From the NCBI GenBank assembly GCA_038496445.1, contig JALMLS010000421.1, positions 124,001-188,000 on the forward strand: a stretch of 64,000 bases of DNA, in the 5' to 3' direction. The notes beneath the pieces were generated by a model, which made no database searches, had not been told where the DNA came from, and saw only the letters and a list, made by a program, of their open reading frames with translations. This DNA is from Trichosphaerium sp. ATCC 40318 (lineage: Eukaryota > Protista > Tubulinea). A program made the position numbers and the translations under genes. The number at the start of each line of letters is the position of its first letter. Position 1 is the stretch's first letter. Positions 11,093 through 19,700 of the stretch are shown here, piece after piece.

Positions 11093-12420
11093 TCAACGGC
11101 TTGATGATAAAGCTAAATCTCCTTGAAGGAGAGTACAAAAAGATCTTCGTTTTATGAACAATACCGGAATCTCTGACTTATTATCACCTTCATAAACACA
11201 CTCGCGTATTGTCTCGTGATCAAACAACCTCTTAAGCAAAGCAAGCTTGAATTTTAACTCTGTTTCTTGTAAATCAGGTCTTCTTTTAAAAGCCAAAATA
11301 AGCGTTGTTCCGTTGCCTGATAGTTGCTCAAGTAATGCCAGAATCTTGTCTTGACGTGTTGATAGTGTATCCAAATCCTCTTGTAGAATAATATACGAAT
11401 ACATTGTCTTTAACGAAGAAGGAAACTCTCCTTTTCCCAAGTCAAATTGAGTTATGGTGATGTCATCTGAAAAATTATTTTTCTCAACATTAGACTTGCA
11501 CAGGTCAACCAATTTTGCTGTTGTGGTCATATTAACGCGTTTTGCGCCTACCACACGTAGAACGAGACCTATAAGTCCAGTACCAGCGCCTGAAAAAAAG
11601 TAAGAAACCAACGAACGTCCAAAAGTATTAAAAGAATAAAAAAACACTAGCAAGAGCTTGATTACGCGCAACGTTCCACGGAGTGCGATACTTCATAGCA
11701 CGACAAAGTATAAAGTACTAAAATATCGCTTGTAGGTATCTTACGCCATAGAAACGTCACAGAACCGCGAATCAAGGAGTCTTGAAACATGTTCTTTTTT
11801 TTTTTCGAATTCATTCAAATGTCAAAAGATTTTATCACGTGCCTAGAACGAGTACTTTTTTTCCATTGTAAAGGAGAGGCGATGTTCTCTTATCAATATG
11901 CAAGCATGTACAATATTCCTACAAGAAAAAAAAGTCAGGGGTTTGAGAAAATGAAGGCGGAACGACAATTCTCCGATAACAGCGAACCCAAAACGATTTA
12001 ATGGAGTACTGGTCGCAATTATCGTAAAACGATTTTTAATGCGCTAAAAAACGTACAATATCAGATACGCGTGCTCGTGGAGCTATCTCAGGTTCTTCTC
12101 GTACTGAAAGGGCGTGGCTTTTGAATGTAAAAGTCCGCTATTGAGAATAATTAGTGACATTGCCCGCATAGCGTTAGTGAATGTATATTAACGCGTTTGA
12201 AATGGTTTGCGAGCGTTGACAAATTTTTTTTTACGGTTTTGTTACGAGTAGATTGTACGCACAATGTTGCCTTTAGATCTTTTAGCTCTGTTTCGGTACA
12301 TTTGGCGTAAAAGGCTGTTAATTTGTTGGTAATCATCGCCACCGCCTTTGTTTACGTTATAAGTACTTACATAACCTTTATAATCTACGTACTGCCTGAT
12401 TCTCTCAATTGGGTTGTCAT
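11093..12420 (-). CDS. Seven-beta-strand protein methyltransferase, METTL21/Methyltransf_16 family (start approximate)
   Basis: SAM motif I GKKVLVLG|AGTGLIGL is restored by a GC-AG intron (11590-11842). Also RTFTFKSHALSVRE, LCKSNVEKN and LILAFKRR, typical of the family. Confidence 0.75.
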
Positions 12421-12640
12421 TCTGTGGTAAGTAAGAAAGTTTAATTAAAAAAGAATCATTACGAAGTTTCTCCATTCACTTAACATGTCCTCACTTAAAA
12501 CAAATAAAAAATCAATGTTTAGGCTGTAATATAGTAATAAACTAGTACAAACCATGTTTGACGGCGTCCGAAGAAACAGTGAGTGATAAGGCAGAGTGTT
12601 GAATTTTTTTTTGAAAATTTATTGGTGTTTTTTTTCAACT

Positions 12641-15600
12641 TTAGTTTCGCCCTGATCGCTCACGTCTCCTGTTCCTGCTCTTATTTCTATAGTACAAACC
12701 TATTTCTTTACCAGATAACCCCGCTGTTTCACTATTACTAGCAGCCCTTCTCATTTCGGCTTTTTTTCGTGCTTCTTCAACGATGTACTGCGATTCCTAA
12801 TTTTTTGAACAAAATTAGTTGAAAAGATTTTACCTTGTCTTTGGAACGTACACGTTCGTCATAGTCAAAAAGGAACCCCATTAATACATTAATATCATTT
12901 TCTTCTAGAACGCCTTTGCTACTTTGTACATTACACATTGAATCCACTGCCTTTCGGAGAGTAGAAATAAGTTCGAAGTGTTTTTTTGTCATTTGAAATG
13001 TTTGATTCTCTCCCGTCTGAATTATCAGTTTATCTTCGTTTGTAGATGTTAAAGTAAGTTCTTGGCCAAACAAAAGAAGAAGAGCTGAAGAAACAAGGGA
13101 AGTATCATGCAAAGAAACACCATTTGATCCCTTCAGAAAAACATTAAAAAAAACCAAGAAAAAAAAAGTAAAGAGACTTTACCTCGACCATGCTATGAAA
13201 GATAACCCAATTCTTCGGGAAGTTTCTCATTTTTGAGTTAACAGAAGAACTACTTGGTGATACTTGACTATCAGACTCAACATAACTCAAGTACGATCTC
13301 CCCCTAAATCATTATTATAAGGCTGAAAATTGAAAAAAAAACCAATTAAGGCTTACCTGTGATTCTTTTTAACTTGCGCTAGCTTTGGATATAATCCAGC
13401 GAATAAGGCCGCTTTTATAGCAGCAGTATTACCAGCGTTTCTGTTTTTATCAGGAGACTTGACATCATAGCCAAAATCTTGAAGAATATCTAAAAACTGC
13501 CATTGCATCCTAAAAAGAAAGAATAAATATCAACATTTCCCTTCTCTTTATGTGGATAAACTGCATCCAAAGTAACTAAAATCTTTAAAACAGCAAGTAT
13601 TTCACACTCTAATACGTGGACTTTTCACACAGAAGAGCTGGAATCGGAAAAAACTCGTTCAGAGATTTTACAACCCTTTTTTTTTGGATGCCTAAAACCT
13701 CAACATTACGTACTTTTCTAGCATTCTAAGTGTATTTGATTCCAAGAAACTATTATAACAGAAATCTCTTACTGAATTTGATCTCTTTGAGTCTGAGTAC
13801 ATGTTCATTATAAAAGAGTGCATAAGATGATCACTATTTGTATCCCTCGCCAAATGTTGTCTTGCGCTATCAACTTGTTTTTCCATACCTGCTACAAGCT
13901 GGAAAGGTGACCTGTGACCTAATCTAGCTACAATAGCAGTGATTGGCATAATACAACCAAACTTCATTCCGTAAAGCAACATTTTACCAAGCTGAGGATG
14001 AACTGGTAATGCGTTTAGTTTTTCTCCAAGAGGCGTTAAGTTTTCTTCCTTATCAAGCACACCAATGTTCTAAAAATACTAGATGTCAGAAGACACGTTT
14101 GATATTAAACCAGGTAATGAGTGTGTACCAAAAGTAGTGATACAGCTTTTTCTACAGCTTCCTCTGAAGGAGGCGAAACGGCTTCTGCTATAGTAGGAGC
14201 AATAGCTCCAAGTCCTGGTATACCCTTCACATGTAGACATACTTCTTCAACAGGCATACGTATCTGGAATAGGTTGTAAGGAGGTGTTCAAGTAATATAT
14301 TGCAAGTACCATTTCTGGATCCTTGAACTCAGCCATTTGTTCAAATTGCCATTTTGAAAACAAGTGATAGCACTACAAATCAGGTTAATAAGCTCAGCAC
14401 TTTAAGTGTATTTGAGTATTCTCGTTACCTTTCCTGGTTTAACACGACCTGCTCTACCTCTTCGCTGCTGTGCGTTCGCCTTAGATACAGGGACAGGAAG
14501 CAAAGAAGATATACCAGTCTCAACATCCTAGAATATGCAATTTAGCAAAAAAGGTAAAACCTTGTGTTTGAGAAACATACGTAGCCTGTCTCTTTGATTA
14601 CTCCTGTGTCAATAACATATACAACATCATTAATCGTAATAGAAGTCTCTGCAATATTTGTAGCAAGCACAATCTAAAGACAAGACATTAAGCGCGTATT
14701 AGCCAATACGTATAAGGTACCTTTCGTTTTCCTCTTGGGGGTGGCGAGAATATCATTTTCTGCTTTGACATTGCAACCATAGAATGAACCACATGTATAT
14801 CCCATGATCTAGAGTGTTTATGCTTTTCAAGGCCAACAGCTAAGTCAGAAATATTCTGCCAACCATCCAAAAACACCAACACAGCTCCTGTTCATTAGTT
14901 AGAAACTAAAACCACATGCATACTTGTAAATACCCTCTCCTTCAGTAGAGTGAATATGCTCTATTAAATTTACTATAAGAGGTACAGGGACCTTCGATTC
15001 TGCTCCTATTGACACCATATTCTCCATGACACTATAAGTTATTTTTTTATCGTTTTTGTAAAAACTACTGTATTCTCTTCTATACATGTCCAGTTTTAAC
15101 TTCTGCTCATCTTCATTACGTTCTTTAAAGAGTAGAGATTAGTATAAGATACAAGAAGATTAAAAAGTGAAGATACTTACTCTTTCCACGATATGATCTC
15201 TTTTTTCGTTTCTGTTTATCGTTTTCAGATGGTTCTTCCTTCCATCTTACACCTTTGCTCAGTACGTCCTCCAAGAAAAACTGCTCAACTGGAAATATAC
15301 GACCTTCTATATGTAACACAGATTCTGTATTAAAATAATCTAAACAGTATTGGTCACTTACGTAAAACACAAGTTCTCGGTAAAATCAAAAAAAAACTAG
15401 TATTTTCTTCGAGAAAAACAAGTACCCGCAAACACTTGAGGATTAATTGTAGCGCTCATAAGTACTATCTTCAAATCTGGTCTAGGACCACGAATAAGCT
15501 TTCTTAGCAATAAAAGACAAAAATCTGTCAAACAATCTCGTTCATGAACCTCATCAACAACGACATGTGTCACTCCTTAATAAAAAAAAACAAAATTAAA

Positions 15601-16613
15601 TAAATCTCATAACATTCTCAAAACAATTTTACCTGTAAGAGTGGGATCATTACGCATCCTTTGAATGAGTATACCTTGAGTAACAAATGATAGCCTAGTT
15701 TTAGGACCACCTGGATTGAGTGTAAATTAATAATTCGCCAGTGTCGGAAAAGACTTTCAAAAAGAACAAAAGATGTTGTCGTAAGTACATACCAACGTAA
15801 TCAAAGCGGATCTGGAACCCAGTAGATTCACCAAGCTTTTCACCACGCTCATGAGATACCCTTTCTGCTATCGAAACAGCTGATATACGCCTAGGCTAAA
15901 GAAAAACTCGTTGAGTTCAAAGAAGTAATAAAAAAGCCCTTACTTGTGTACAAATGATGTTACAATCCTCTTCACGCTGTAAACAGTCGTCTAGTACAAA
16001 TTGTGGAACTTGTGTCGTCTTACCACAACCAGTGTGACCTACAATAACGACTGCTGTGTTTTTACGTATTGAGTCAATAATATCATGGCGGTTTTGATAG
16101 GCTGGAAGCTGTTTACGAAATTCAAGAGTGTTTGCAACGCTAAATCGCTTTAGAAACGCTTATAACGATTTCATACGCGTAGAAAAGACGCACGTCCTAT
16201 TAGTTTCTGGATCAGGTATACTTGGAGGTGGCCCTGTTGGTTTATTCCATTTGGCACTGTTGGCTTCTTTTTTGGGCTCTTTAATCTTGTTGTCATGCGT
16301 ATTGAGAAATTTAGACAGATGCGTGGTAGTGTGCGATAGAATAGAGTCCTCAATATACGGACTGACATCTTCAATGCTGAATATAGTGTTAAACGCTCGT
16401 TAATGTAACATTGAACTCATACATTTCTTCTTCTCCATCAACATTTTTAATGCTCGGATAATCGTTTTCTCGCTTTCTGCGTACATTTCGACGCCATTGT
16501 GGTCTGAAACTGGTGCGGTACGAGCGTTTTGACCTCGCTACATATTAACGAGCGTAATAATACTCTGTGTACCCACAATTAGTTCTCCTAGGCCCTCTCA
16601 CGGCCTTGTACAT
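12641..16613 (-). CDS. DHX36: DEAH-box RNA/DNA helicase, DHX36 (RHAU/G4R1)-like (start approximate)
   Basis: [82 protein letters not shown]2 ([21 protein letters not shown]) and OB region. Last exon encodes [13 protein letters not shown], matching the DHX36-specific motif. Confidence 0.88.
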
Positions 16614-16706: not shown

Positions 16707-19700
16707 ATGGCACAAGAAGAAGGGTACACGCTTAGTTGACACGCGCACAAAGCTTACTTGTAGATTGAAGGGAAACTTTGCTACTAGATGATGATGGAGG
16801 TAATGACAGCGTTGAAGCACTTAATATAGAAATACCCGAGAAACAGAGCAAAAAAAATAAGTGCAAAAAGTGCGGGAGAACTCAAATAATAACGCCGGGG
16901 ACGCACTCTAACACGTTTAAAATAGCTGTTTAATATACTCATGGGAGTATTGTGCATTTTTCGGCTTGTTTCTTCATTTCTACTTTTGCATGATAGCTGT
17001 TGTGCTCTATATTATGATCGCAATTAGTTGGTACGTTTTTACCGCGTTTTTGATCCTTGTTAAATCGAGGTTACGAGCAAAACTTGTTATTTAACCTAAA
17101 GTCAAGGGTTCTCGACATCTACTACAGTCTCGTCGCCGAACAAGCAAATCAGACTGAAGTTTATGGGTTTTTCTTGATTGTAGCTATTGTTGGTGCTATT
17201 TACTTTGTAGTAGATATGCTGAAGGTACAAAGATAGATAGATATACCTAGAGAGAAAATCACGTGAACAAAAAGATCTTGTTTGATCCTTTTTTGATCAT
17301 CAACATGAATCACATCACTTGTTTTTGGACTGATTTCGTTTTGTTTATTTTTACTGAAACACTTACTAGGTTATGGTTATAAATGCTGGCCTTATTATGC
17401 TATCATTATGGAGACAGAGGAGCCATGTGTTTTACGAAAGCGCACCAAGTATGTTTGTTTTGTTGAACTATTTCCTCTAATAACGTCTAAGGAATGGTTC
17501 ACATGCTTGGATCATATTTTGTTGGATTCATTGTACTCCTCATATGCCTAGCTTTTGCAGGTCCGTCTCACGTCCATTACTACCTATTAGTTTGGTGTAA
17601 GGAGGCTGTTTTTTAAACTTTTTATTTTATAGGTTTTGCAACAAGATCAAGCCTTGCAGGATGGGTTATTATTGTTTGTACAGGCGTAGCTGAGATTCAT
17701 ATCTTCTTTGGAACCCTCTATCAAATATTCCATAATGTTAGACATAAGATAATGTTATTCAAAGACTACTACGATAATCACACTGGCTTGAGTGATGAAC
17801 AACGTGAAAAAGTCCACGTGCGTTTTTTTTTTTACTTGCACAAAATTTTAAGTTTTTTACTAGGCTGAACTAGCAAACAACTGTGGGTTTACACATACGA
17901 ATTTTACAAGTAAAGCAGTTTTGGCATCAATTATAACTATCGTTTGTGGTATTCTTGTATTTTCAGACATCGGAGAGAACTATGCAATGAGTACGTTTCT
18001 TGTTGTTTGATTTTTGTTATTTGGGTTTTTTTTTCAACGTTTAACTTTGTTCAAAGGAATATTTGGTTATATTGTCATGGTTACCTTAGTTTTAACATAT
18101 CTTGTAATGAGATATGTTGCTCTACATAAACTACAAGTCCGATACTTTATTATTGCATGGGCACTTTGGTGGGCAGTGTTCCTTATCATTACGATTGCTG
18201 CTTTTGTATTTATTGGTGCGTTTTCTTTTCTTATGTTTTTGAGTCTTTTAACAAGACACAACTAAATGAAAATGTACAATATAGGTCCTGGAGGAGCTAC
18301 AGCAGTCTGTCTCTCGTATTTTATTCTATCTGAAGCTGGCTTAAAGGTACATCTTTTAAGTCCTAAATTGTTTTTTGGAGATGTTTCCAAACGTGCCTCA
18401 TTAACAGTTTGTTTAAGCCGATAATATCTGCTCATGAAGACGAAGGTATCAGCGGTATATTCTACTGGTGCACTAAACCACCTACCTTTACACCACAAGG
18501 TACTTCATAGAGATAAAGAAACAGCACCTACTAACATTAGTAAAAGGTCCTAGGACGCCAAGAACAAAACTTCATCGTTCAAGAGTGTCTCAAGCGATTG
18601 CAGGAATTTGCTCTTGCTCTGCTATACTTCTTTTTGTAATTCTATTACTACTATTCCTCACATTCTTGGCCCCAGAGACAAGCGCTTGGGAGCCAGAAGT
18701 CTGCAAAGGTACAATTTAAAACAACTTATCTGTCACTTCCTTTACCTTCTGTGACGATTTCTTTTACCTTCTATGACGATTGTGGTAATCTGGAACTTAC
18801 TCGTTTAAGTGCATGAACCTATAGTACCAGCAACACAAGGAGACTATGCTCTGTGTGAATCAACATGGCATAACTTGACTCTTCTTGATTATGCTTGGCT
18901 GAGCGCTATTTCTTACTTGGATGGTGATGCAATACAGAACGCAACAGACTTGGTATTAGATGAAGGATGGAACCATACACATACTTATAGTCAACCTTAC
19001 TCTGTTACTTTCCATGAGATTGTTTGGGAGAATGCACATGGAGTACGCCAAGTTTACATGATTTTTTAATTGCGTCCATTTTCCTCTTTTTGAACCAAAA
19101 AAGTCTGAAGTCTTATCAAGTTTTGACGAGTTTGTTTCTTTCTAGGAAGCTCCTCTAGCTATTTATTTGGTAAGAGGAACATACGATCTACATGATTGGG
19201 CACAGAACGCCGATATTTGGTCACAGATTACTATGTTCCAAGCGTTTTCATACTTTGGCTTATTCACATCGTACCTTAACCTCAAAATATCTTTGTGTTG
19301 TTTGTAATACTCTTTTAAGGTTTTGGCCTGATTATTCAGTGAGCGCGTATATTAAGGTTGCTTCTTCTTTTGAAGCGTTATCTCCAAGAGGGTAAAGTTT
19401 ACAGTTAAAGAACAAAGGATTCTTGGTTTTCTTTTTTTTTCTTTCTTTTTTTTTGTTTTTGTTGCTCTTTTACTCATTGATGCCTTTTAGCTACGGTTAT
19501 TATTATACACCACTGGTAGAACGTATTGAAGAGTATCAAAAGAATCATCCAAATGCAACGATAGTTGTCACTGGGCATTCATTAGGCGGTGGTTTGGCTA
19601 AAATAGCTGCCGCTGCTTTAAAAATCCAATCCATCTCATTTTCTTCACCTGGTATTTATCATACACGTGCCAAATTGGCGTATGATATAAGTGTAGAAGA

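Follow-up and report, generated by a model that had tools for sequence, protein, structure and literature searches.

A DHX36-like helicase gene whose last exon encodes a candidate G-quadruplex-binding motif at the C-terminus

In structural and mechanistic work on the helicase DHX36, its specific motif is, to our knowledge, always taken to form an N-terminal extension, which passes over the G-quadruplex from RecA1. Peptides comprising the motif also bind G-quadruplexes in isolation. The locus described here raises the question of whether a helicase of this kind can carry the motif at its other end. In a 64,000-nucleotide stretch of DNA (the window), an earlier note had read a helicase gene on the minus strand, proposed that it belongs to the DHX36 type, and placed the DHX36-specific motif in its last exon, downstream of a very short intron. 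We examined the gene model, the family assignment, the last exon and its motif, the conservation of that exon and the evidence for its splicing.

The gene is a DEAH/RHA helicase gene modelled as 16 exons on the minus strand, running from about 16.6 kb to 12.64 kb. Over 16139-12641 the modelled exons give an unbroken protein of 837 residues up to the stop codon, and the 15 introns of the model, all GT-AG, range from 37 to 204 nt with a median of about 53 nt. Fourteen exons (13183-16139) are modelled to encode the helicase core, from RecA1 and RecA2 through the winged helix and ratchet to the greater part of the OB subdomain; the remainder of that subdomain and the C-terminal extension are encoded by the penultimate exon (12834-13130). 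The last exon (12641-12796), whose sequence and frame were read directly, consists of 51 codons and a TAA stop, and an AATAAA at 12618-12623, 18 nt past the stop, is a likely poly(A) signal. At the 5′ end, the N-terminal exon ending ...PDPETNRT (16194-16376, with predicted boundaries) has neither the motif nor a Met of its own. Upstream of it, one or more candidate first exons at 16410-16613 contain no motif in any frame and permit two start models, one with an ATG at 16613 and introns of 39 and 46 nt and the other with an ATG at 16486 and a single 33-nt intron; codon-usage scores favour neither. A multi-pass membrane-protein gene lies on the plus strand at 16780-18300, and since it and the helicase diverge from about 16.6-16.8 kb, there is scant space for further 5′ exons. 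We also observed that a minus-strand frame at 16430-16537, in the 5′ region of the helicase, aligns weakly (E = 0.6-2.5) from residue 2 with ribosomal protein eL29 (segment AKSKNH...RKWHRNGIKKP..RY.SLKGVD). It has no Pfam match; the likeness may be accidental, or the frame may be what is left of an eL29 copy or belong to the helicase N-terminus.

The gene model contains the expected helicase motifs, QRRGRAGR among them, and matches the Pfam families HA2_N and HA2_C. Among solved structures, the set on which family closeness was judged and in which DHX57 has no entry, the helicase exons are by sequence nearest to DHX36. The ratchet exon scores 94.6 bits with fly DHX36 and about 90 bits with the mouse, bovine and human proteins, as against 55.9 bits with DHX29 and at most 43 bits with Prp16, DHX8, HrpA, MLE, DHX15 and DHX9. 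Fly DHX36 is likewise the best PDB match of the Walker-A exon, and for the two C-terminal exons DHX36 is the only helicase in the PDB to be matched, the penultimate exon matching DHX36 chains only. DHX36 is thus the best PDB match for each helicase exon tested, which bears out the family proposed in the earlier note. The N-terminus is short, with about 105-130 residues ahead of motif I, and gives no UBA, RWD or dsRBD-like match, an arrangement consistent with DHX36 architecture. Two elements specific to DHX36 have been described, the RecA2-G4 loop (residues 412-430 of the bovine protein) and the OI hairpin (844-863, with a KKRK tip) (Banco et al. 2025, PMC12621225). At the place of the former the window protein has a 20-residue basic insertion, for which no alignment with the DHX36 loop was obtained. 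The exon ahead of the OI hairpin aligns to DHX36 in its flank only, and KKNHRGR then stands at the hairpin position.

The frame of the penultimate exon runs ...ERVRSKDK to 12834 and then meets the intron GTAAAATC...AAAATTAG (12833-12797, also written GTAAAATC...CAACTAATTTTGTTCAAAAAATTAG), after which the tail exon starts at 12796. Both the last exon sequence and this 37-nt phase-0 intron at 12797-12833, as they had been reported in the earlier note, match the minus strand and its frames letter for letter. No other of the 15 modelled introns is as short. It begins with GT and ends with AG, and has a branch-like ACTAAT box that is also present in another intron of the gene. The predicted spliced junction 12834/12796 would read ...AAAGACAAG joined to GAATCGCAG. 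The tail reading frame opens precisely at the acceptor, the TAG of which is its upstream stop, and the first in-frame ATG of the tail is at codon 15. Were the intron kept, the protein would end ...GIAVHR. Downstream of the helicase, the neighbouring gene on this strand encodes a Methyltransf_16 lysine methyltransferase (11096-11671 and 12245-12475, E = 1.8e-10), with an ATG at 12475, only about 165 nt past the helicase stop; this identity rules out a neighbouring helicase duplicate to which the tail might have belonged as first exon.

When the 51-residue tail was compared by phmmer with 177,635 distinct PDB sequences, the best match was fly DHX36 (CG9323, PDB ID: 5n8r; E = 0.032). The alignment falls on the N-terminal motif of the fly protein, chain residues 12-42, with the aligned segment GLRGKDIGLYYRN (in longer form, PGLRGKDIGLYYRNLARQQKKDR). 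The consensus of this motif (RSM or DSM) over 40 orthologues is P-small-x-L-hydrophilic-G-basic-hydrophilic-I-G-aliphatic-aromatic-aromatic, in which P54, L57, G59, I62 and G63 are invariant, and mutagenesis has shown P54 and the polar residues to be dispensable (Lattmann et al. 2010, PMC2952847). The tail matches 12 of the 13 consensus positions, at 12689-12727, and a 15-residue basic stretch follows. It retains the invariant L57, G59, I62 and G63, and the sole miss is a Thr in place of P54. Scoring of all 13-mers over the six reading frames, about 128,000 positions in the window, placed this site alone at 12; the next best were seven sites at 9, with no score of 10 or 11 in between. A regular expression of ten consensus positions matched once, as compared with 8e-5 matches expected from composition. 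These results substantiate two statements of the earlier note, that the tail holds the DHX36-specific motif and that the motif is positioned past the OB/C-terminal region, the last exon following the penultimate exon with the OB end. An AlphaFold2 model of the tail, built from a two-sequence alignment, predicts a helix over residues 2-23, a loop over 24-28 and a second helix over 29-49 that begins at the GKE of the motif. Its mean pLDDT is 85, with the peak over residues 31-40 and confidence highest on the motif, and the prediction agrees with the published description of the motif as a loop plus a helix.

No second copy of the motif was found at the other end of the protein. In all frames of the N-terminal region (16800-16100), 13-mers unsplit by introns reach at most 6 of 13 consensus positions, and relaxed regular expressions run over the 5′ exons and the whole window returned no second motif, as the earlier note had asserted for every frame of the 5′ exons. 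Canonical quadruplex motifs of the form (G3+N1-7)x4 are absent from both strands of the window, the G+C content of which is 36.7%. This absence carries little weight, and it lends no support to a G-quadruplex function. Two-tetrad quadruplex motifs number 31 in the window, against 22 +/- 5 in shuffled sequences.

With the penultimate exon as query, HMMER was run exhaustively against 1.84 billion protein representatives and gave one true relative, an 86-residue metagenomic ORF (P0001) on a contig of 1,242 bp (L001); the other three matches were to repeat proteins. The order of elements on this contig is ...NWVMYHKMVE, an intron, a homologous exon ending ...GFLMCYEEK, an intron of 43 nt and a tail frame, EMSVIEQSAQEAREKAAEERRQNRLAGNAKTGKEWGDYWRSKSRGRRQGGRR...HEY*. 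The 43-nt intron is a phase-0 GT..AG intron with an ACTAAC box at the place that matches the 37-nt intron of the window. In addition, at L001:200-420 the intron ahead of the penultimate exon, after ...KMVE, apparently starts GCAAGT and would be of the GC-AG type. The tails of the window and L001 are 39% identical and the exons that precede them 36% identical. The local alignment score of the two tails is 74, as compared with 31 +/- 5.5 in 5000 shuffles, none of which reach 74, and the remaining frames of the tail DNA are full of stops. Similarity has thus been kept at a divergence where a 3′ UTR would retain nothing, which points to protein-level constraint on the tail. On this comparison, the tail exon codes for protein, is conserved and occupies an equivalent position in an independent relative. 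Searches for further relatives were less productive. Protein searches by indexed words, whether from the tail alignment, the ratchet exon or the alignment of the C-terminal exon, gave nothing new in a set from which a length filter excluded full-length proteins. A degenerate DNA pattern of the core common to the two tails, G-K-E-x-G-x-Y-x-R-x-K-S-R, matched 39 loci in a metagenome collection that did not include L001; all of these were chance matches, many of them in one repeated non-coding sequence.

What has been conserved in the tail bears on the reading that best survives besides our own, namely that the tail is spliced on but is a generic basic helix, a non-specific RNA-binding arm or a nuclear or nucleolar localisation signal, whose likeness to DHX36 arose by convergence or chance over a conserved core. 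The motif of L001 (GKEWGDYW) matches 9 of 13 consensus positions and is weaker than that of the window. It retains G59, the basic and acidic residues, G63 and both aromatics, but L57 is replaced by Lys and I62 by Trp, both residues being invariant in animals, and an Asp stands at the aliphatic position. The residues that the two tails share are mostly Gly and basic, and in our own reading the basic 15-residue end resembles a nuclear localisation signal. Moreover, the L001 tail alone gives no DHX36 match in the PDB, and when the two tails are combined in a profile the fly DHX36 motif is the sole PDB match, at E = 0.27, weaker than for the window tail by itself. A generic tail would nevertheless have to reach by accident a match of 12 of 13 positions, with four of the five invariant residues, inside a protein with a DHX36-like core, when no other position among the roughly 128,000 exceeds 9. 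Even the 9 of 13 in L001, found at the homologous place, is rare against a background of 7 in about 128,000. We regard a generic basic tail as unlikely, though it deserves to be kept in mind, and prefer the reading in which the last exon supplies a DHX36-type motif.

That reading depends on removal of the 37-nt intron, and here one public run (X1) is informative. The run holds part of the window, with 6% of sampled words, at 95-99% identity, and therefore comes from a near relative. That it is RNA is our guess, its nature not being recorded; its contigs contain a spliced joint, 17029/17106, in a neighbouring plus-strand gene, from which a 76-nt GT..AG intron (17030-17105) has been removed, and this joint indicates that RNA is present in the run. 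At the last helicase junction, 12834/12796, no spliced joint was found among its contigs, at a depth of about 2.4 and with the middle 20 nt of the intron uncovered. One contig (12821-13008) extends 13 nt into the donor side of the intron and another (12629-12800) extends 4 nt into the acceptor side, and these are unspliced molecules, whether of pre-mRNA, of a retained-intron transcript or of DNA. Of the five differences listed between the window and X1, four are synonymous changes at third codon positions; the change in the tail exon, GCG to GCA, is one of them. The sequence bears out the length and phase that the earlier note gave for the last intron, to which L001 adds a counterpart.

These contigs favour a second alternative, in which the 37 nt are retained or seldom removed and the motif frame lies in a 3′ UTR, either untranslated or translated in a minor, possibly regulated, isoform. 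Both contigs contain an edge of the intron and neither contains the joint, and the intron is shorter than any other of the gene. The run is RNA only by our guess, however, and with coverage so shallow and interrupted, pre-mRNA or DNA could account for its molecules. In L001, where coding exons are only 36% identical to those of the window, the tail is 39% identical as protein, its frame is open and its GT..AG intron is compatible in frame, none of which would be expected of a 3′ UTR; the sole listed difference from X1 in the tail is synonymous. We take the X1 contigs as mild evidence against splicing that is outweighed by the comparative evidence, and consider intron retention rather improbable. 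A separate small protein or free G-quadruplex-binding peptide is the least credible of the alternatives and most improbable: each tail has an in-frame ATG (at codon 15 here, giving 37 residues, and at codon 2 in L001) and the intron edges in X1 are unspliced, but the two ATG positions are not homologous, no ATG precedes codon 15 whereas the similarity of the tails starts at residue 6, upstream of the window ATG (EEARKKAE vs QEAREKAA), no promoter or transcript of its own is evident, and the phase-compatible intron is kept in both species.

In the reading that we prefer, the 51-residue last exon would be joined to the helicase by removal of the 37-nt phase-0 intron and would add to it a helix and, after a short loop, an α-helix with the near-consensus motif and an Arg/Lys-rich end. 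The motif helix would be amphipathic, with a face of I, G, L, Y and Y that could cap the exposed G-tetrad of a parallel G-quadruplex while the flanking basic residues touch phosphates. By the predicted geometry it would be anchored through about 28 residues to the C-terminal extension beside the OB subdomain, not to RecA1. The C-terminal motif is real and probably functional, with G-quadruplex binding as its predicted activity. On balance we lean, by a modest preference, towards the full proposal of a DEAH/RHA helicase like DHX36, some 950 residues long, that offers a G-quadruplex-capping helix from its C-terminus.

The likeness to DHX36 (also RHAU or G4R1; PDB IDs: 5n8r, fly CG9323; 5vhe, bovine; 8vv2, human) extends to the DEAH/RHA core, winged helix, ratchet, OB subdomain and C-terminal extension, and to the motif itself, which is identical to that of fly DHX36 at 11 of 13 positions and has the same predicted loop-plus-helix form and a trailing basic stretch. 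The placement differs. In DHX36 the motif is held by its C-terminal side, about 130 residues ahead of motif I, whereas in the window protein it lies at the extreme C-terminus, past the OB subdomain and C-terminal extension, and it is the N-terminal side that provides the tether. The window protein also lacks the Gly-rich N-terminus of DHX36. C-terminal nucleic-acid-binding tails occur in other DExH helicases, for example the RGG box of DHX9/RHA, and these resemble the window tail in being short basic extensions past the OB fold that add substrate affinity, but are made of Gly/Arg repeats and have no helix of the I-G-aliphatic-aromatic-aromatic type that stacks on a G-tetrad. A parallel to the placement may be G4P, which is reportedly constructed from two copies of the DHX36 motif and reportedly binds G-quadruplexes with the motif outside its native N-terminal context, which would make a C-terminal placement plausible; unlike the window protein it is engineered, with tandem copies and no helicase. 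G4P has been described as a small artificial G-quadruplex-binding probe (PMC7672459).

Orthologues bearing the motif are known from choanoflagellates to humans (Lattmann et al., PMC2952847), and the literature that we found places the motif N-terminally only. Among the matches listed, none of the titles and abstracts that name the motif concerns a C-terminal or a protist version, and a search that combined DHX36 with amoebae found no paper on both. The C-terminal placement accordingly appears new, a judgement that derives from this literature search. The earlier description of the enzyme as naturally permuted is overstated: the sequence has a short motif moved to the opposite end of a protein, without any rearrangement of the fold being seen.

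Taken together, the findings suggest that the DHX36 motif may behave as a movable module. As a tentative account of its history, which we hold possible and less firmly than the placement itself, the motif may be older than Holozoa and mobile, with an amoebozoan-like lineage carrying it in a dedicated 3′ exon and having lost the N-terminal copy; that exon could have started as the first exon of a tandem copy, since lost, and been captured. Were this history true, it would amount to a natural experiment in which the substrate-selecting peptide of a helicase works from either end. A natural enzyme whose motif is tethered at the opposite terminus, and by the opposite end of the helix, would probe how strongly the capture of a quadruplex, and the pulling mechanism that has been proposed, depend on the geometry of the tether. 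Such an enzyme would place the origin of the motif earlier than animals and their unicellular relatives, or else the convergence would be a striking one, and C-terminal tags for targeting quadruplexes could take the arrangement as a compact natural model.
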